From the IMG/VR virus record IMGVR_UViG_3300032288_004964, positions 321,334-385,333 of that record: a stretch of 64,000 nucleotides of DNA, one strand, 5' to 3'. This document shows positions 2,624 to 48,886 of the stretch, in pieces. The notes under the pieces were generated by a model, which made no database searches, was not told the origin of the DNA, and saw nothing but the letters and a program-made list of their open reading frames with translations. The position numbers and the translations under genes are program-made. Every line of letters starts with the position of its first letter. Within the stretch, counting starts at the first letter, position 1.

Positions 2624-3682
2624 TTATACTGTAAAGTTTTTCGATCCTTTTAATTTCTCAAGAGTGTGTTTCTCATCAAGTTCTATGTTTTTAGGTATTC
2701 TAACATATATCTTAACATAAAGATCACCTAATCCATAATGAACATCAGGTATTCCTTTACCATTTACTCTATAAATCTTACCGTGTTCTGTTCCAGGTTC
2801 AATAGCTATTGTTAAGTCACCATGTGGTGTTTTAACTTTAACATTAGCACCAAGTATAGCATCTAAAACCGAAATAGTTTTTTCAATGTTAATATTGTTT
2901 CTATCTCTTGTAAAATATGTTTCTTTTATTTCTTCTATTATAATTTGAAGATTTCCAGGTAACCCATTTCTAGTGTAGTTACCAAATCCATTCATTGTTA
3001 GCTGAATATCATTTGAAACCCCTGCTGGTATTTCTACATCAACTGTTTGTTCTTTTGAAACAGTACCATCACCGTGACAATCACCACATTTACTTTTTAT
3101 TTGCTTACCTGATCCACCACAATCTGGACAAGTTGTAGCTGTTCTAATCTGACCAAATGGTGTGTTTTGAATAACGGTTCTTTGTCCTACACCATTACAA
3201 GGTAAACAATCCTTAACATCTGTTCCTCCTTGACCAGAACATTTTTCGCATCTATCTTGTCTTCTATACTTTAACTTCTTATTAGTACCTTTAAGAATTT
3301 CATCTATTGTTAAACTAACTTTAATTCTCAAATCAGAGCCTTTTGTTTGCCTAGGTTGTCTATTATATCTTTGACCAAAGATATCACCAAATTGACTAAA
3401 AATGTCATCCATGTTGAAACCATGACCTTGTTGACTAAATGGATTTCCTCCACCAAATGGATTACCGGATGCCGATCCAAATCTATCATAGTTTGATTTT
3501 TTTTCAGGATTTGACAATGTGTCATATGCCTCAGCAGCATCTTTGAATTTAGCTTCTGCTTCAGGGTTATCAGGGTTTTTATCGGGGTGATATTGCATAG
3601 CCATCTTTCGATAAGCCTTTTTAATCTCATCATCAGATGCACCCTTATCTACGCCTAGTATGTTATAATAATCTTTACTCAT
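2624..3682 (-). CDS. dnaJ: DnaJ chaperone
   Basis: J-domain with HPD, G/F region, four CxxCxGxG repeats, C-terminal GDLYV. Confidence 0.97.
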
Positions 3683-8652: not shown

Positions 8653-9246
8653 ATGAATATTGTTATACTTGGGGGACCAGGGAGTGGAAAAGGAACTATC
8701 TGTGAAAAACTTGTAGAAGAGTTTAATTATAAAATGGTTTGTGCTGGTGACTTACTTAGAGAAGAAAAAGCATCTGGTTCAGAATTAGGAAAGCAAATTG
8801 CTAAATTGATTGATGCTGGTAACTTAGTTCCTGATAATGTTATAACTGACATTATCTATAATGAATTTAGGAAACCTATTAGACTTGGTAAATTCTTTTT
8901 AGTAGATGGTTACCCAAGAAGTATAAAACAAGCAATTAGTCTAAGTCAAATGATTAATGTTCAAATTGTTCTTTGGTTAGAAGTAAGTGATGAAACAACT
9001 ATTAAAAGAAATTTGAATAGAGGTTTAACATCAGGTAGACCAGATGATGCAAATGAAGAAATCATTAAAAAGAGACTAGAAAATTATAAAGAAATGTCAG
9101 TTCCTATTAAAAGGTATTACAATGACTGTATTGTAGAGATTGATGGTGAGGGAACACCAGATGAAGTTTATCAAAGGATTATAGACACCTTGTTTGAAAA
9201 TGTAAGAGAACCAAGAGATGTCACTGATATTTTAGATGAAGAGTAA
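8653..9246 (+). CDS. adk: adenylate kinase
   Basis: LGGPGSGKGT P-loop, AGDLLREE, GNLVPD, DGYPRS, GRPDD. Confidence 0.93.
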   Translation: MNIVILGGPGSGKGTICEKLVEEFNYKMVCAGDLLREEKASGSELGKQIAKLIDAGNLVPDNVITDIIYNEFRKPIRLGKFFLVDGYPRSIKQAISLSQMINVQIVLWLEVSDETTIKRNLNRGLTSGRPDDANEEIIKKRLENYKEMSVPIKRYYNDCIVEIDGEGTPDEVYQRIIDTLFENVREPRDVTDILDEE

Positions 9247-9250
9247 AATG

Positions 9251-9274
9251 AAATCCAGATTTAATCTGGATTTT
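9251..9274 (+). terminator. hairpin terminator after adk
   Basis: aaatccagat-tta-atctggatttt. Confidence 0.65.
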
Positions 9275-9275
9275 T

Positions 9276-9285
9276 TAATATATAA
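9276..9285 (+). promoter_or_regulatory. late-promoter-like box
   Basis: TAATATATAA-agta-ATG(9290). Confidence 0.65.
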
Positions 9286-9289
9286 AGTA

Positions 9290-10630
9290 ATGAAACTATT
9301 TAGATATAAAGAATTTATAAAAGAAGGGTTAGAAGTTAAAAATTCAATTCCTACTTATGAACAAGCATTAGAATTATGTTCTATTGAAGAATCTCCATTT
9401 TATGAATCAAAAATGGAAGTAGATGAATATAATGTATCTGTTTTTAATTATAGACTTGCTCAATACAAAGACTTTTCAAATCCTATTCCTGAAAAGCCAG
9501 AATTAAAAGGATTTGAAATGAGAGGTTTAACTTTTATATTTAATAAAGATGGTTCTTTATTTAAAAGATATGTGTTGCTTGAAAAGTTTTTTAATTTAAA
9601 TCAAGTACCAGACTCTTTATACTCTGTTGTTAAAAACTACAAAATTAAGTTTGTTAATAATAAAGAAGATGGTTCAATTGCTTCTTTTGTTAAACTACCA
9701 AATGGTAAAGTTGTTGGTAAATCCAAAATGGGATTTGATAATGACCAAGCTAATGGTATAAATAGAATTTACAAAACTAATTCAGATATTAAAAAATTTG
9801 TTGATTGGGCTTTAGATAATGATATAGTCCCAGTATTCGAATATGTTGCTCCAAACAACCGTATTGTTCTAAGATATCCAGGTGAAGAATTAATCTTATT
9901 AAGATTAAGAGATAATAAAACAGGTAAGCATATTGATATTAGAGACCACTTGGATAAAGTTGGTAATATTAGAATTGCTCCTTTTGAAGATGAAATTAAA
10001 GATTTAGATACATTAATTGAATTAAACGCTACTCAAGTTGATAAAGAAGGTTCTATTGTTACTTGTGAAGATGAGAATGGTCATGACTTTTTCTTTAAGT
10101 TAAAAACACCTTGGTACTGTGAAAGACATGGTTTATTAACAAATGATATTTATAGAGAACATATTATTATTAATTATATCTTAGATGATAAGATAGATGA
10201 TATATTAGGTCAAATACCAGAAGAAGAAGTTGAGGCTCATCAAAGAATTAATAAGATTATTTCTATTGTCAAAAAAGCAATTTCTGACAAAGTGTCTGAA
10301 ATTGAAAAATCTTATGATGATTTTATTAAATCAGGTATTTCTAAAAAAGATTATGCTATAAAAAATAGAGTTGGTAACACTAACTTTGGTTTTGTTATGA
10401 ATATGGTTAAAGCAAATGATTTAAGAAAGATGTCTAAAGAAGAAATATTAGATATCTATGATAATATGGAAGAATATGAAAAGGCATTACAAAGATGTCA
10501 ACCATATGAAATGGCTAAAGAATGGATTAAAGATTTAACTAAGAGATTAAACCTTTCTAGAGAATGGCTAAAGAAAAAAGATCCAACTCTTTTCTTTCAA
10601 GAACCAGAAGAAAGTGATGATGATAATTAA
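9290..10630 (+). CDS. T4 Rnl1/RnlA-family RNA ligase with N-terminal tag (start revised from 9236)
   Basis: EMRGLTF, LEKFFNLN, KEDGS (motif I), FEYVAPNNRIVLRY, EGSIV, FKLKTPWY; starts MKLFRYKEFIKE. Confidence 0.9.
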   Translation: MKLFRYKEFIKEGLEVKNSIPTYEQALELCSIEESPFYESKMEVDEYNVSVFNYRLAQYKDFSNPIPEKPELKGFEMRGLTFIFNKDGSLFKRYVLLEKFFNLNQVPDSLYSVVKNYKIKFVNNKEDGSIASFVKLPNGKVVGKSKMGFDNDQANGINRIYKTNSDIKKFVDWALDNDIVPVFEYVAPNNRIVLRYPGEELILLRLRDNKTGKHIDIRDHLDKVGNIRIAPFEDEIKDLDTLIELNATQVDKEGSIVTCEDENGHDFFFKLKTPWYCERHGLLTNDIYREHIIINYILDDKIDDILGQIPEEEVEAHQRINKIISIVKKAISDKVSEIEKSYDDFIKSGISKKDYAIKNRVGNTNFGFVMNMVKANDLRKMSKEEILDIYDNMEEYEKALQRCQPYEMAKEWIKDLTKRLNLSREWLKKKDPTLFFQEPEESDDDN

Positions 10631-11579: not shown

Positions 11580-13469
11580 ATGGCAAAAGATGTAATTATT
11601 GGAATTGACTTAGGAACTACTAACTCATGTGTGGCAGTAGTTGAAGGTGGTGAACCAATTGTAATCACCAACTCAGAAGGTAAAAGAACAACTCCATCAG
11701 TTGTTGGGTTTACTGAAAATGACAGAAAGATTGGAGACCCTGCTAAGCGTCAGGCGGTAACTAATCCAACAAAAACTGTTTATTCTATCAAAAGATTTAT
11801 CGGGAAAGATTTCTCAAACTGTACTGATGAGGTAACAAGAGTACCTTATCAAGTTGTTAAATCTGGTAGTAATGTACCAGGTGTTAAGATTGATGATAGA
11901 ACTTATACACCTCAAGAAATTTCAGCTATGATTCTTCAAAAGATGAAGAAAACTGCTGAAGATTATTTAGGTTATGAAGTAAAAAGAGCTGTTATTACAG
12001 TTCCTGCTTACTTCGGTGACGCTGAAAGAACTGCAACTATTGAAGCTGGTGAAATCGCTGGTTTGAAAGTTGAGCGTATTATCAATGAACCAACTGCTGC
12101 GGCGTTAGCTTATGGTTTAGATAAGAAAAGTTCAGATTCTAAGATTTTAGTATTTGACTGTGGTGGTGGTACACATGACGTATCAGTTCTTGAAATCGGT
12201 GATGGAGTTTTTGAAGTTAAATCTACTGATGGTGATACTCACTTAGGTGGTGATGACTTTGATAATGAAATCATTAACTGGATGGTAGAAGAATTCAAAT
12301 CAGAACATGGTATGGATTTATCTAAAGATCCAATGGGTCTACAGCGTCTTAAGGATGCTGCAGAAAAGGCTAAGATTGAACTTTCATCAACTTCTCAGAG
12401 TGAAATCAATCTTCCTTATATCACAGCTAAAGATGGAATGCCTTTACACTTTGTTAAAACCCTAACAAAAGCTAAATTTGAACAAATGACCTCTAAACTT
12501 GTTGATAGAGCTATCGCTTGTGCTAAATCTGCTTTGAAGAGTGCTAAGTTAAAACCATCTGATATTGATGAAGTTATTCTTGTTGGTGGTTCTACAAGAA
12601 TTCCGGCGATTCAAGAAGCTGTTGAAAAATACATTGGTAAGAAACCAAACAAATCAGTTAACCCGGATGAAGTTGTTGCCTTAGGTGCGGCTATTCAAGG
12701 AGCTGTTTTAACTGGTGGTATTACTGATGTTCTCCTTTTAGATGTTACTCCTCTTTCATTAGGTATTGAAACTATGGGTGGTGTAATGACAAGATTGATT
12801 GAGTCTAATACAACTATTCCGACCCGTAAGTCAGAAACATTCTCAACTGCATCAGACAATCAACCATCTGTAGAAATTCATGTTCTACAAGGTGAAAGAC
12901 CGATGGCTAGAGATAACCGTTCTCTTGGTAGATTCCATTTAGATGGTATCATGCCAGCTCCAAGAGGAGTACCTCAAGTAGAAGTAACTTTAGATATTGA
13001 TGCTAATGGTATCTTATCTGTATCTGCTAAAGATAAAGCTACTGGTAAAGAAAACAAAATCCGTATTGAAGGAGGTTCTCAATTATCTAAAGAAGAAATT
13101 GAGAAAATGAAAATGGAAGCTGAAGCTAATGCTGAATCTGACCGTCTTGAAAAAGAAAAGGTGGATAAAGTTAATATGGCTGATAACTTAATCTTCCAAA
13201 CTGAAAAACAAATCAAAGAATTCTCTGATAAGTTAACAGAAGAAGATAAATCAAAGCTTAATGCTGATTTAGAAGAAGTTAGAAAAGCTCACTCTGATAA
13301 AGATGTTGAGAAGATTGATGAATCAACTAAGAAGTTAAATGAGACTTGGTCTCAAATTTCTACAAGATTGTATCAACAATCACAAGAAGCTCCACAAGAA
13401 CCACAATCTAATAGCACCGACACTGGTAATGGCGATGTTGAAGATGTAAACTTTGAAGAAGTTAAGTAA
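11580..13469 (+). CDS. dnaK: DnaK (Hsp70)
   Basis: [63 protein letters not shown]. Confidence 0.98.
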
Positions 13470-36234: not shown

Positions 36235-38931
36235 ATGAAAAAATTGCTTTTAATAGCAACATTCTTGATTACAAGCCTGTTGTCTTATTCTCAAGCACCT
36301 GCTAATGATAATTGTAGCGGTGCTCAAAGTCTCGGAACACTTCCAACACCAGCCGCCTGTCCAAGTGGTATTGGTTCATCGGTCAATGTTTCAGGTACAA
36401 ATATTAATGCGACAGGACCATTGCCATATACAACATTATTAGGATGTCAGACTGGTGGTAATCAGCCTGGTCCAGCTTTAGATGTATGGTACTCTTTTGT
36501 TGCATCAGGTAATCAAGTTAATATAAATATAACACCTGGTTCTGCTCCATTTTTAGCAAGTCCGGCTATTACACTTTGGACAGGATCTTGTGGGGCTTTA
36601 GTAGGATTTAACTGTGATAATAATGGAACTTTAACTGGTAATAATTCAGTTACATTTCAACCCATGACACCTGGTCAAACATATTACATACAAATAAGTG
36701 GTATGAATGCTACTAATCAGGGAAATTTCAACTTATCTGTGAATTCTTCTAATGATTGTAATAATTGTTTACAAGTTGCTAATCTAACAGTTAGTCCTGC
36801 TCCCACAAATGGAACTTACCCACCAAATACAACAGTTAATTTTTGCTATAATATTTCTTCTTTTACTCAAGTAAGTTCCAATTGGTTACATGGAGTAATA
36901 CCTACTTTTGGGTGTGGGTGGAATTTATCTACACTTACTACAACACCTGCCGCATCTTGTTCTGGTAGTGGAACTTGGAGTTGGTATCCATCTTGGACCA
37001 GTTCAGCAAATGGTTCTACTTGGGGACCTGGATTTGCTTATGATTATAATACATCTCCTGGCAATCCTGGTAATAACTTTGGTGATAACTGTTCAACTCC
37101 TAATTGGAACTTTTGTTGGTCTATTAAAACAAAAGCTGTTTGTAGTCCAACTTGTACAAACTTAAATATTAATATCAATACAACCGGTGATGGTGAGTCT
37201 GGATCTTGGACATCAGTAGCTTGTCTAGGTGATCCAAACTATCAATTTGCAGCAGTTATGTCTTGTTGTAGTTCAACTGCATCCAGTACAAATCCAACTT
37301 GTTTTGGTGGTTCTAATGGTTCAGCAACTGCTATTCCTGGTTCAACCGGTGTTCCTCCATTTACATATTCTTGGAATACAGTTCCCACACAGACTACACA
37401 AACTGCTACTAATTTAAGTGCTGGGGCATATACCTGCACAGTTACTGATTTTAATGGATGTACTTCTACTTGTAATGTTACTATTTCAAATCCTCCTCAA
37501 ATTTTAGTACCAGTAACACAATCAAATGTAACTTGTTTCGGCGGTTCTAATGGATCAGCAACTGCTAACCCATCTGGTGGAGTTGGTCCTTATACTTATT
37601 CTTGGAATACAGTTCCTACACAAACTACACAAACTGCTACTAATCTAATACCTGGTACATATACTGTAACTGTGGCAAGCTCAAATGGTTGTATAAAAAC
37701 AAACACAGTTAGTATTACTCAACCAACGGCAATAGTTGTAACTACTTCAACTACCAGTGCTTCTTGTGGTAATTCAAATGGTTCAGCAACTGCTAACCCA
37801 TCTGGTGTTGGTCCTTATACCTATTCTTGGAACACAACACCAGTTCAAACTACACAAACGGCAACAAATATACCATTTGGTAGTTATACTGTTACTGTTA
37901 CAAATAGTAGTGGATGTACTGGGACAACAACTGCTAATGTACCATCAACTGGTAGTGTAAGTGCTACTTCAACATCAACACCAACAAGTTGTTTTGGTAG
38001 TTCAGATGGTTCTGCCACTGCTAATGGATTTGGAGGTACTTTATATACATATCTTTGGAATACAACACCACCTCAAACAAGTCAAACAATTACTGGATTA
38101 CCAGCGGGCGTTTATACTTGTACTATATCAAGTGCTGCTTGTAATGCAACAACAACTATTATAGTTACCGAACCACCTATTATAAATGTAACATACTCAA
38201 CTACTCCATTATCTGGGTGTGTACCATTAGCAGTAACATATAATAATACAACTCCAGGTATATCAAATTGTAGTTGGAATATAAATGGTGTGATTACTAA
38301 TAGTTGTAATGTTACTCAAGTATTTACATCAGGTGGAACATATAACTCAACACTAACTGTAACTGATGCTAATGGTTGTTCAAATTCAACAGGTCCAATA
38401 GTTGCTAATGCTTACCCTATTCCATTTGCTTCTTTTTCTCCAAATCCATCAGTAACTAATTTATTATCACCAACTATTACATTTGATAATATGAGTTCGG
38501 GTGGTAGTTATTTTTGGAATTTTGGTGATGGTAACACATCAAGTAGTCTAAATCCTACAAACACATATGCTGATACAGGAACATATGTGATTAATCTAAC
38601 AGTAACTAGTCAATATGGTTGTTCTGATTCAACCTATTCTACAATACATATAACTGATATTCTCTCTGTTTATATACCTAATGCTTTTACACCTAATGGT
38701 GATGGTAAGAATGATTCATTTTTACCAATTATTTTAGGATTTGATAAATATGAATATTGGATATTTGACCGTTGGGGTGAAATGATATTCAATACAAATT
38801 CTGGTAGATCTTGGGATGGAACTTATAAAGGTAAATTAGTTCAACAAGATGTTTATATTTGTAAGTTAGTAGTTTATGATTTAAATAAGAAAAAGTATGA
38901 ATATACTAATCACATTTCTTTAATTAGATAA
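36235..38931 (+). CDS. secreted SprB-repeat / PKD protein with T9SS type-B (gliding-motility-associated) CTD
   Basis: signal peptide; four SprB-like repeats (TCFGGSNGSATA...YTYSWNT...VTD.NGC); YFWNFGDG PKD; YIPNAFTPNGDGKND...IFDRWG...WDGTYKG. Confidence 0.9.
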   Translation: MKKLLLIATFLITSLLSYSQAPANDNCSGAQSLGTLPTPAACPSGIGSSVNVSGTNINATGPLPYTTLLGCQTGGNQPGPALDVWYSFVASGNQVNINITPGSAPFLASPAITLWTGSCGALVGFNCDNNGTLTGNNSVTFQPMTPGQTYYIQISGMNATNQGNFNLSVNSSNDCNNCLQVANLTVSPAPTNGTYPPNTTVNFCYNISSFTQVSSNWLHGVIPTFGCGWNLSTLTTTPAASCSGSGTWSWYPSWTSSANGSTWGPGFAYDYNTSPGNPGNNFGDNCSTPNWNFCWSIKTKAVCSPTCTNLNININTTGDGESGSWTSVACLGDPNYQFAAVMSCCSSTASSTNPTCFGGSNGSATAIPGSTGVPPFTYSWNTVPTQTTQTATNLSAGAYTCTVTDFNGCTSTCNVTISNPPQILVPVTQSNVTCFGGSNGSATANPSGGVGPYTYSWNTVPTQTTQTATNLIPGTYTVTVASSNGCIKTNTVSITQPTAIVVTTSTTSASCGNSNGSATANPSGVGPYTYSWNTTPVQTTQTATNIPFGSYTVTVTNSSGCTGTTTANVPSTGSVSATSTSTPTSCFGSSDGSATANGFGGTLYTYLWNTTPPQTSQTITGLPAGVYTCTISSAACNATTTIIVTEPPIINVTYSTTPLSGCVPLAVTYNNTTPGISNCSWNINGVITNSCNVTQVFTSGGTYNSTLTVTDANGCSNSTGPIVANAYPIPFASFSPNPSVTNLLSPTITFDNMSSGGSYFWNFGDGNTSSSLNPTNTYADTGTYVINLTVTSQYGCSDSTYSTIHITDILSVYIPNAFTPNGDGKNDSFLPIILGFDKYEYWIFDRWGEMIFNTNSGRSWDGTYKGKLVQQDVYICKLVVYDLNKKKYEYTNHISLIR
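37262..38185 (+). repeat. four ~78-aa SprB-like intragenic repeats
   Basis: recurrent ggttcagcaactgcta and tattcttggaa(t/c)aca blocks; boundaries approximate. Confidence 0.75.
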
Positions 38932-42530: not shown

Positions 42531-43001
42531 ATGGAAAAAAACCAGTTAAATAACTTAATTAGATTCTGTTTTAATTTCCATAGAAGTATGGATTGTGACT
42601 GGACTATGCAACATCCAAGTTATATTTTAGAGAAGTGGAATAAGTATATTGGTGTTAAACCTAATAAGTTAGAATTATATCCATCTAATGACCTGACTAT
42701 CAAGTGGTTAAAAACTTGGAATGTTAGTAATAAAGATTGGGAAGAGTTAAAAGAGATTGTTACTTTTATTCAAGTTGTTAATATGAGAGCACTTGTTGTA
42801 TCTAGTGGAAATAAAGGTAATAGATTTATACAATGGTCACCATCTGAACTATTAGATGAATTTGAAAGATTGATTGGTGATAAAAATAAAATAAACAAAG
42901 ATGAATATAAAGGTTTGCATGAACTAGTTGATAGAGAAGTTGAATATTGGCTATGGCAAACAGATAACAAAAGAGATTATAATTTAAATTTATTAGTATA
43001 A
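42531..43001 (+). CDS. hypothetical protein with C-terminal tail motif
   Basis: ends NKRDYNLNLLV. Confidence 0.75.
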   Translation: MEKNQLNNLIRFCFNFHRSMDCDWTMQHPSYILEKWNKYIGVKPNKLELYPSNDLTIKWLKTWNVSNKDWEELKEIVTFIQVVNMRALVVSSGNKGNRFIQWSPSELLDEFERLIGDKNKINKDEYKGLHELVDREVEYWLWQTDNKRDYNLNLLV

Positions 43002-43210
43002 GTAAGAGAACCTATCGCTGGTGAAAACTGGAGGAAGTTCGCGACTACAGAACCTAACACGGGAGAATAAGTAGAGAAATTGAAAGTTCGTTTGTACCGA
43101 GGAAGTAGCAACACATACAGATCTAGAGTGTCGGTTCCTCTATGATGATCGGGTTGTGGCATAGATAAATGATAGGATAGAACAGAATCGTGGCTAAGCT
43201 CAACTTTACT
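43001..43210 (+). ncRNA. rnpB: RNase P RNA, compact form
   Basis: CR-I GAGGAAGTTCGCGA; CR-IV/V TAGATAAATGA...AACAGAATCGTGGCTAA; P4 AGT(T)CGCGA pairs with TCGTGGCT with the bulged U; P2 CCTATC/GATAGG; P3 GAAA hairpin; AAGTAGCAACAC resembles CR-II. Confidence 0.85.
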
Positions 43211-43257
43211 GATAAATTTTATAAAACAAAATATAAACAATAAAAAAACAAAACAAA

Positions 43258-43538
43258 ATGAAAACAATTAAATTTTTACTATTGGCTCTTGCCATCACAT
43301 CACTAACTTCTTGTTTGGTTGGAAAGTTAAAATCACTTATCATCAAACATCTGGTTATAACTGGTTTAATAATAGAGGTGAAACTAATCATTTTGTAACT
43401 AGTGTCCAAGTACTAGATAAAAACCCAATCGGTCACGCTTTTGGTAACAACACAGATGATAAAAAATCAAATTGTGATTGTAAAGTAAGTGGTAAGGTAA
43501 TAGATACCATTTATGTAGTGATTGATAAAACTAAATAA
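43258..43538 (+). pseudogene. lipoprotein gene with a 1-nt frameshift near 43316
   Basis: MKTIKFLLLALAITSLTSC lipobox in one frame, GWKVKITYHQ... in another; one extra T in tgtttgg restores C-F-G-W. Confidence 0.65.
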
Positions 43539-44299
43539 TGAAAGAAAATAATAATAATTTCAGTAATGAAATAAGAGACCTGCGATTAGCAGTTCTAATA
43601 GATGCAGACAATGTTCCGTATTCTAATGTAAAACAAATGTTTGAGGAGATTGCAAAATATGGAACTCCGACATTTAAAAGAATTTATGCAGACTGGACTA
43701 AACCAACCGTATCTGGTTGGAAAACCGTTCTGCTTGAAAATGCAATCACACCAATTCAACAATACAGTTACTCTACTGGTAAAAATTCAAGTGATAGTGC
43801 TATGATTATTGATGCGATGGATATACTTTACTCTGGTAAAGTTGATGGATTTTGTATTGTATCAAGTGATAGTGACTTCACAAGACTTGCTACAAGATTA
43901 AGAGAAGCTGGTATGAAAGTAATTGGTATTGGTGAAAAGAAAACACTAAAACCATTTATTGTTAGTTGTGATAAGTTTATTTACTTTGAAATCTTAAAAG
44001 CAAATAAAAATGTAACTGAAGGTGCTGTTGCTGCGGCTACTGAGACAACATCTAAAGTAGATAAAGAATTAATTCATTTAATTAATGATAGTATTTCTGA
44101 CTTAGCTGATGAAACAGGATGGGCCTTCTTAGGTATGTTAGGAACTTTAATCTTAAAAAAGAAACCAGATTTTGACTCAAGAAACTATGGATTTGAGAAA
44201 CTACTTCCATTCTTAAAGAGTCTAAAGAAATTTGAGATTGATGAAAGGGAAACTGGTAAAGGTAAAACAAAACATGTTTATATAAAAACTATTTCATAA
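43538..44299 (+). CDS. NYN (LabA/DUF88) PIN-like ribonuclease with C-terminal OST-HTH/LOTUS domain
   Basis: AVLIDADN, KNSSDSAMIIDAM, SSDSDFTRL, PDFDSRNYGF.KL. Confidence 0.9.
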   Translation: MKENNNNFSNEIRDLRLAVLIDADNVPYSNVKQMFEEIAKYGTPTFKRIYADWTKPTVSGWKTVLLENAITPIQQYSYSTGKNSSDSAMIIDAMDILYSGKVDGFCIVSSDSDFTRLATRLREAGMKVIGIGEKKTLKPFIVSCDKFIYFEILKANKNVTEGAVAAATETTSKVDKELIHLINDSISDLADETGWAFLGMLGTLILKKKPDFDSRNYGFEKLLPFLKSLKKFEIDERETGKGKTKHVYIKTIS

Positions 44300-44735: not shown

Positions 44736-45359
44736 ATGGATTTAAGTATAACAATATTAGTATTATTTTTAACAATAGTTCCTTTATTTATCGCTTACTT
44801 TCTTGGTTCAATACCAACATCGGTTTGGATAAGTAAATGGATATATGGAATTGACATCAGAGAATTTGGAAGTAAAAATGCAGGTGCTACAAACACTCTT
44901 AGAGTATTAGGCAAATGGGCAGCAATTCCTGTTTTAGTCATAGATATTTTAAAAGGATTCTTTGCAGTTTATATAACACATTATACTATTATGATGGATA
45001 ATACAGCTGTCATGTGTTTATTAGGACTTTTTGCTATTATTGGTCATATATTTCCAATTTTTGCTAAATTTAGAGGTGGTAAAGGAGTTGCTACAACATT
45101 AGGTGTTTCAATTGCTTTATTTCCAATAGCTACTTTGATATCTATTTTTGTATTTTTAATATCTGTTATTTATTATAGAATTGTATCATTATCATCAATC
45201 ATCGCTAGTCTTTTACTTCCAATATTTGTTTACTTCTTAACGGATAATCAAACTTTAGTAGACTTTTCAATGTTTATACCTGTTTTGTTTATAATAACAC
45301 ATCATAAAAATATTAAAAGAATAATTAATAAATCAGAACCTAAATTTACCTTACTATGA
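44736..45359 (+). CDS. plsY: glycerol-3-phosphate acyltransferase PlsY
   Basis: AYFLGSIP, DIREFGSKNAGATN, DILKG, GHIFP, FRGGKGVAT, HHKNIKR. Confidence 0.93.
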   Translation: MDLSITILVLFLTIVPLFIAYFLGSIPTSVWISKWIYGIDIREFGSKNAGATNTLRVLGKWAAIPVLVIDILKGFFAVYITHYTIMMDNTAVMCLLGLFAIIGHIFPIFAKFRGGKGVATTLGVSIALFPIATLISIFVFLISVIYYRIVSLSSIIASLLLPIFVYFLTDNQTLVDFSMFIPVLFIITHHKNIKRIINKSEPKFTLL

Positions 45360-48798: not shown

Positions 48799-48870
48799 GC
48801 AGGTATAGCTCAGTGGTAGAGCAGGATTCTCTAAAAGTCTTTGTCGTGGGTTCGATCCCCGCTACCCGCA
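48799..48870 (+). tRNA. tRNA with anticodon CUA (amber suppressor); CCA not encoded
   Basis: GCAGGTA-TA-GCTC AGTGGTA GAGC-A-GGATT CT[CTA]AA AGTCT-TTGTC-GTGGG TTCGATC CCCGC-TACCCGC-A; full cloverleaf with one A-C mismatch at 3:70. Confidence 0.88.
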
Positions 48871-48886
48871 CTAAAATAAAACAAAC

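Follow-up and report, generated by a model that had tools for sequence, protein, structure and literature searches.

A window of 64,000 nt from the IMG/VR virus record IMGVR_UViG_3300032288_004964 was analysed. It encodes Hsp70, GrpE, NusG, a type II topoisomerase, a T4-type RNA ligase, adenylate kinase, dCMP deaminase, a DNA methylase and a SprB/PKD protein with a CHU_C type IX secretion sorting domain, together with a single tRNA gene. Between the stop codon of ORF 42531-43001 and the next ATG, at 43258, lies an island of 43% G+C in DNA of 28% G+C (0.41-0.43 at 43000-43199, against 0.15-0.30 in the flanks). This island carries the conserved regions CR-I, CR-IV and CR-V of an RNase P RNA, the P4 pseudoknot with a bulged uridine, and helices P1-P3, P5-P7 and P15-P17 (Table 1). 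All of the elements named in a preliminary description of the locus, namely the P4 pseudoknot with its bulged U, the P2 pairing, a GNRA-capped P3 and CR-IV, are thus confirmed. Only 56 nt lie between the two P5 strands, forming P6, a P7-like helix and one hairpin, where a normal RNase P RNA carries a specificity domain of roughly 150 nt.

Table 1. Features of the RNase P-like RNA locus and the single tRNA gene of the window
Position	Strand	Feature	Observations
43000-43206	+	Whole RNA gene (~207 nt)	Rfam RF00373 match at 43001-43205; match to our family model R1 at 42998-43208, 220 bits
43000-43008	+	P1, 5' strand	43000-03 pairs with 43203-06 and 43006-08 with 43199-201, with a small internal loop between them; inner GAG/CUC changes to CUC/GAG, UUC/GAA and AAG/CUU in relatives; terminal helices of 6-10 bp with different sequences in five other loci
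43011-43016	+	P2, 5' strand	6 bp with 43171-43176
43018-43031	+	P3 hairpin	5 bp with a GAAA loop; all three innermost pairs show changes on both sides; extended by an extra hairpin in LR745206
43030-43044	+	CR-I	GGAGGAAGUUCGCGA
43031-43044	+	CR-I and P4, 5' strand	GAGGAAGUUCGCGA; 43036-37 and 43039-44 pair with 43188-43195, with U43038 bulged (at least 97% conserved)
43045-43048	+	P5, 5' strand	Pairs with 43105-43108; paired in 61-62 of 62 sequences, 3 of the 4 pairs covary
43050-43054	+	P6 pseudoknot, 5' strand	GAACC, pairing with GGUUC at 43133-43137 in the P17 loop
43059-43100	+	Specificity-domain stub (~42 nt)	P7-like helix (43059/60-62 with 43097-99/100) enclosing one hairpin, plus a conserved 3' bulge UUGYA; inner hairpin predicted by RNAalifold, with covariation
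43105-43111	+	P5, 3' strand, and J5/15 CAA	GCAA at least 97% conserved; matches E. coli GGAG-CAA at 243-249, which contains A248
43112-43158	+	P15-P16-P17 arm	GGU on the 3' side of the P15/P16 loop at 43152-43154; all three helices covary; GGGUU at least 97% conserved, aligned with E. coli G292-G293-U294
43162-43171	+	CR-IV	UAGAUAAAUG
43171-43176	+	P2, 3' strand	
43182-43195	+	CR-V	ACAGAA followed by the P4 3' strand UCGUGGCU
43199-43206	+	P1, 3' strand	
48799-48871	+	tRNA, anticodon CUA (amber suppressor)	Rfam tRNA, 59.5 bits; also found by ARAGORN; no encoded CCA; candidate substrate

Covariance-model searches of the window

At Rfam gathering scores the only hit in the window is the tRNA. 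In E-value mode, however, a search of 801 nt around the island gives a single, full-length match to the archaeal RNase P model RF00373 (model positions 1-288), at 28.2 bits against a gathering score of 84, with E 3.8e-6, or roughly 3e-4 when scaled to the whole window. Published random-genome maxima for this model are at most 14.3 bits (PMC3579882). The minimum-free-energy fold of the single sequence is uninformative, and its energy is worse than that of shuffled sequences (z = +1.9), implying that thermodynamics alone would not have found this RNA.

Homologues and covariation

A blastn search of GenBank phages found a 72.5%-identical copy in LR745206 (634,780 bp) and a partial match in LR756501 (735,411 bp), both uncultured huge phages. 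An exact 14-nt pattern proved far too unspecific in viral contigs, returning 117 or more loci of which only two were real, but further motif patterns retrieved copies from IMG/VR, from 58 genuine metagenome contigs and from one 3-kb contig of a metagenome-assembled genome. Contigs that carry the RNA reach 476, 385, 357 and 327 kb, the 385-kb IMG/VR contig being identical to the window across this locus. On 11 diverse copies, RNAalifold recovered P3, P4, P5, P15, P16 and P17 without guidance, with compensatory changes at 16 of its 36 pairs. A covariance model built from that alignment (R1) found 73 copies, at 89-230 bits, in a first set and 18 more in the 16 new loci of a last pattern search, giving about 90 homologues in all, from lakes, sediments, soil, wastewater and marine samples. 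Six pattern hits, one of them on a 515-kb 'Acidobacteriota' contig, were rejected by the model with filters off. The only hit in a cellular genome is the 3-kb contig, assigned to Roizmanbacteria and packed with 13 tRNAs, which is most likely misbinned phage DNA.

The 73 copies of the first set comprise 62 distinct sequences in about 34 clusters at 85% identity. In these, 98.4% of cells are standard pairs, and 22 of the 36 modelled pairs and 357 cells change on both sides; slid controls give at most 28 such cells and at most 49% pairing, and none of 500 shuffles reaches the observed values. P4 is paired in 62 of 62 sequences at all 8 pairs, with 29 double-change cells and compensatory changes at 4 pairs. 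Importantly, helices that were not part of the model, and to which the alignment was thus not fitted, behave in the same way. P2 is 92% paired with 77 double-change cells, against at most 54% paired in slid controls and 0 of 500 shuffles reaching the observed value. For the P6 pseudoknot, all five pairs are formed in 61 of 61 sequences with letters, with 111 double-change cells that 0 of 500 shuffles reach, and P7 is 91.5% paired with 60 double-change cells.

Conservation of CR-I and CR-IV in the first set is partly imposed by the search patterns. A second set was therefore collected using only the L15, CR-IV and CR-V motifs. In this set GAGGAA[G/C]UUC is kept in 15 of the 17 sequences in which CR-I is present, the structure is 94.3% paired, and 25 of 36 pairs, including 5 in P4, show compensatory changes. 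Family members range from 174 to 311 nt, with 15-127 nt between the P5 strands in the second set.

Comparison with known RNase P RNAs

The three conserved blocks of the window RNA, GAGGAAGUUC, UAGAUAAAUG and ACAGAA-N8, align with the corresponding blocks of RF00373 and RF00010 and of Escherichia coli M1 RNA. Comparison with M1 RNA, the bacterial type A RNA encoded by rnpB, shows that the J5/15 CAA (E. coli C247-A249), the GGU loop and the ACAGAA of CR-V followed by an 8-nt P4 strand all correspond, and that CR-IV is identical to E. coli UAGAUGAAUG at 9 of 10 positions. The P1-P2-P3 scaffold and the P6 pseudoknot to the P17 loop are likewise shared. There are differences, however. The phage RNA is about 207 nt, compared with 377 nt, and the ~42-nt stub replaces P8-P14, with CR-II and CR-III. 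CR-I has GGAAGU where RNase P RNAs normally have GGAAAGU, so that the bulged U follows the second rather than the third P4 pair. P18 is absent from the window RNA, although a P18-like GNRA hairpin is present in some members (those of loci L002, L122, L123 and L197). The phage-family model, run on the E. coli rnpB locus, placed its best hit on rnpB, but only weakly (6.4 bits, E 0.038, 3' half only).

Other members of the family also match RNase P models below threshold. Of 24 other loci examined, 12 match RF00373 at 26-49 bits, and the L197 member, from a 146-kb viral contig, matches the bacterial class A model RF00010 at 62.5 bits (E 8e-19) against a gathering score of 100, with P1-P3, CR-I, P5, P15-P18, CR-IV and CR-V aligned and the specificity domain deleted. 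About 90 model positions are deleted in the Rfam alignments.

The archaeal type T RNAs of Thermoproteaceae (Chan et al. [quoted passage not shown] Type T RNAs, however, have a 3-bp P2, a 2-nt J5/15, a shortened P15 and an archaeal type A-like core, with 61-78% G+C, whereas the phage RNA has a 6-bp P2, a 3-nt J5/15, bacterial-style P6 and P15-P17 with GGU, and 42% G+C. The best match within the Rfam clan (CL00002) was RF00373 or RF00010, not the type T model. The reduction thus looks convergent rather than a sign of shared family membership.

Engineered catalytic-domain-only bacterial RNase P RNAs retain the same part of the molecule and cleave pre-tRNA with reduced efficiency (PMC5839562), but these are laboratory truncations, whereas the phage RNAs form a natural, conserved gene family with its own stub in place of the specificity domain. 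The diverged RNase P RNAs of CPR bacteria and Mycoplasma fermentans (PMC8172020) also need sub-threshold Infernal searches and manual refolding, and some lack P12, P13, P14 and P18, but they are cellular and still have a specificity domain. Two-thirds of the CPR examples lack the CCA-binding motif (written UGG in that paper), which the phage family keeps invariantly, as GGU. The camelpox/orthopoxvirus RNase P-like RNA (PMC3001073) is also virus-encoded, but it comes from a eukaryotic virus, its similarity is limited to some secondary structure, and it showed no pre-tRNA cleavage in vitro; the phage family keeps the full set of core motifs, has covariation support and sits among tRNA genes.

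Genomic context

The window is syntenic with the curated huge phage records LR745206 and LR756502. Al-Shayeb et al. place their five genomes above 634 kb, predicted to infect Bacteroidetes, in the Mahaphage clade (PMC7162821); given its length, we read LR745206 as one of these, and the CHU_C domain encoded in the window fits that host. In the window's own subfamily the gene order is o188, o324(-), a 156-aa ORF, the RNA, a small lipoprotein-like ORF and o140, and no tRNA is adjacent, the nearest being 5.6 kb away. The 156-aa ORF has no Pfam or PHROG family and no credible Atlas lead. The downstream NYN + OST-HTH protein has a nuclease fold but occurs only in the window and one other locus, and is not a conserved partner.

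In the more divergent subfamilies the RNA lies inside tRNA arrays. A tRNA is present in the fetched locus for 29 of 73 hits, and 21 of these lie within 300 nt. The nearest tRNA is on the same strand in 27 of 29 cases, and 174 of 185 tRNAs share the strand. In ten loci the RNA is separated from flanking tRNAs by only 0-11 nt, like one more unit of the array. In LR756501 the RNA is followed by a clean intrinsic terminator.

No gene for RnpA was found in the window. Pfam scans of 62 ORFs of the window gave no PF00825, and a tblastn search with E. coli RnpA, albeit an insensitive test, hit only bacterial contamination or unrelated records, with none in LR745206 or LR756501-3. A protein database search returned only Enterobacterales RnpA (at least 76% identity), and was of no use as a distant profile.

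Discussion

We conclude that the locus is best explained as the gene for a miniature, phage-encoded RNase P RNA, derived from a bacterial type A RNA by loss of nearly the whole specificity domain, and we hold this reading with reasonable but not full confidence. The preliminary description, which took the RNA for a catalytic-domain-centred variant with a reduced specificity domain, is supported in this respect. The core helices and both pseudoknots covary across about 34 sequence clusters, and the retained elements include the J5/15 CAA that corresponds to E. coli A248 and the GGU loop that in bacteria pairs with the tRNA 3' end. We infer that the RNA folds into the catalytic domain, probably recruits the RnpA protein of a Bacteroidota host (the preliminary description suggested that it may borrow host RnpA or a phage protein), and removes 5' leaders from the phage's own pre-tRNAs, which are made in large, tightly spaced polycistronic arrays. 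The binding site for RnpA in bacterial holoenzymes appears to lie in the retained domain, and the activity of isolated bacterial catalytic domains makes such an enzyme biochemically plausible. Where the RNA lies upstream of a tRNA, the cut at the 5' end of that tRNA would also generate its own 3' end.

Some features fit this interpretation less well. The domain that recognises the tRNA T-loop is missing, and the scores lie below the Rfam gathering thresholds. The GGU loop is invariant, yet none of the 185 phage tRNA genes encodes CCA, implying either that CCA is added before 5' processing or that the loop has another role.

The family is absent from Rfam 15, since nothing reaches gathering score in the window or in about 25 relatives' loci. 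The preliminary description stated that RNase P RNAs have been reported in some huge phages, but we found no such report in literature searches that did not cover most subscription journals, so that prior description cannot be excluded, and Al-Shayeb et al. do not mention RNase P. RNase P RNA is one of the few universal ribozymes and has been treated as a cellular and organellar gene. A conserved phage family would add tRNA 5' maturation to the translation genes already known from huge phages (tRNAs, synthetases, tmRNA and ribosomal proteins), would represent the smallest natural bacterial-type RNase P RNA, and would be a second, independent loss of the specificity domain after the archaeal type T. 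It would also offer a compact, low-G+C scaffold for structural and mechanistic work on the catalytic core, and a marker for huge-phage contigs. Curated covariance thresholds hide the whole family, and phage ncRNA annotation under-reports it.

Could the RNA have another role? It is possible, though unlikely, that it is an active ribozyme whose main substrates are not ordinary pre-tRNAs but tRNA-like or other structured sites in phage or host transcripts, or a relaxed-specificity enzyme for atypical phage tRNAs such as the suppressor tRNA. Loss of the specificity domain that reads the T-loop should relax substrate choice, the gene in the window's subfamily is not next to tRNAs, and some phages carry two divergent paralogues in tandem (loci L168, L205 and L206), which suggests specialisation. 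The strongest context signal in the family as a whole, however, is ordinary tRNA arrays covering many anticodons, and no alternative substrate has been identified. About equally doubtful is a catalytically dead RNA that acts as a decoy or sponge for host RnpA or pre-tRNAs, to redirect or shut down host tRNA maturation during infection. The protein-binding part of bacterial RNase P RNA appears to lie in the retained domain, CR-I deviates by one A, the specificity domain is gone, no phage RnpA gene was found in the searches above, and the inactive camelpox RNA, the only previously described viral RNase P-like RNA, was discussed as a possible decoy (PMC3001073). Nevertheless, selection keeps elements that a protein sponge would not need, namely the bulged U in a fully paired, covarying P4, the J5/15 CAA, the GGU loop and the P6 pseudoknot with P15-P17, and placement on the same strand inside phage tRNA operons fits a processing role better. 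A decaying fragment of a captured host rnpB gene, or a chance resemblance, is suggested only by the sub-threshold Rfam match and the folding energy, and is effectively refuted by the 94-98% pairing and abundant compensatory changes, since a pseudogene would not preserve pairing.

Finally, we consider it somewhat more likely than not that huge phages encode their own working RNase P ribozyme, a natural catalytic-domain-only enzyme of bacterial type that is excised from phage tRNA polycistrons by the same processing it performs. This would be the first functional virus-encoded RNase P. It would give the phage host-independent, possibly relaxed-specificity, tRNA 5' maturation, including for suppressor tRNAs used in stop-codon recoding. 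Reading TAG as sense does not lengthen genes in this window.

Genomic context of the mini RNase P RNA

The only tRNA encoded in the window has the anticodon CUA (an amber suppressor; labelled Pyl by ARAGORN) and no encoded CCA. TAG ends only 3 of 71 long ORFs, yet reading TAG as sense does not lengthen any gene in these 64 kb. The window also encodes a protein with a T4-type RNA ligase 1 domain (PF09511). This is the kind of enzyme that phages use to repair cleaved tRNAs, and so represents another tRNA-maintenance function in the same window.

The ORF immediately upstream, of 156 aa, ends at the first bases of the RNA and is conserved upstream of it in 13 relatives and in the huge phage LR745206 (27-38% identity). 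It has no Pfam or PHROG family and gave no credible Atlas lead. The protein encoded 330 nt downstream of the RNA, which combines a NYN nuclease domain with an OST-HTH/LOTUS domain, is present only in the window and in one related locus, L159, and is absent from the otherwise syntenic relatives. It therefore looks like a recent insertion rather than a partner of the RNA. On the opposite strand a TTG-start ORF of 96 aa overlaps the whole RNA, but this is a mechanical ORF and there is no reason to think that it is a gene.

Elsewhere in the window, an 898-aa protein with SprB repeats, PKD domains and a CHU_C type IX secretion sorting domain carries a Bacteroidota signature, pointing to the host phylum. 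The window also encodes a number of cell-like genes, comprising Hsp70 with a GrpE, NusG, adenylate kinase, dCMP deaminase, a rhomboid protease, GNAT acetyltransferases and the PlsY acyltransferase.

Coordinates of features in the window and in related loci (L numbers denote individual loci)
Sequence	Position	Strand	Feature
Window	9236-10630	+	T4-type RNA ligase 1 domain protein
Window	11580-13469, 44736-45359 and small ORFs across the window	+ (for the two positions given)	Cell-like genes
Window	36235-38931	+	SprB/PKD/CHU_C protein
Window	42531-43001	+	Upstream ORF
Window	42977-43267	-	ORF overlapping the RNA
Window	43538-44299	+	NYN plus OST-HTH/LOTUS protein
Window	48799-48871	+	tRNA (CUA)
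L002 (LR756501)	3228-3262	+	Intrinsic terminator
L127	5069-5412	-	tmRNA gene
L168	56-266 and 484-719	-	Tandem mini RNase P genes
L199	862-1153	+	Larger family member
L204	120-430	-	Larger family member
L205	7668-7841 and 8140-8272	-	Tandem mini RNase P genes
L206	8618-8791 and 9068-9314	-	Tandem mini RNase P genes
L193 (JAAXWV010000224.1)			Mini RNase P RNA and tRNAs

Variation among related loci

Some phages carry two mini RNase P genes in tandem, as seen at the loci L168, L205 and L206. In L205 and L206 the second copy is only 174 nt, has a degenerate CR-I and scores 50.9 bits. At the other extreme, the larger family members L204 and L199 (311 and 292 nt, respectively) have 102-127 nt between the P5 strands. 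Rfam gave no RNase P hit for them at E < 0.01.

In LR756501 a strong intrinsic terminator (GGGGUA...UACCCC followed by a U run) sits about 20 nt after the RNA, marking it as a discrete transcription unit on that strand. In L127, a locus on a 105-kb viral contig, a tmRNA gene (tag ANPALALAA) lies in the same tRNA island as 18 tRNAs, a CUA suppressor tRNA and the mini RNase P RNA. Finally, L193, a contig of 3,053 bp that is binned as Candidatus Roizmanbacteria, carries the mini RNase P RNA plus 13 or more tRNAs on one strand, and looks like huge-phage DNA misassigned to a MAG.
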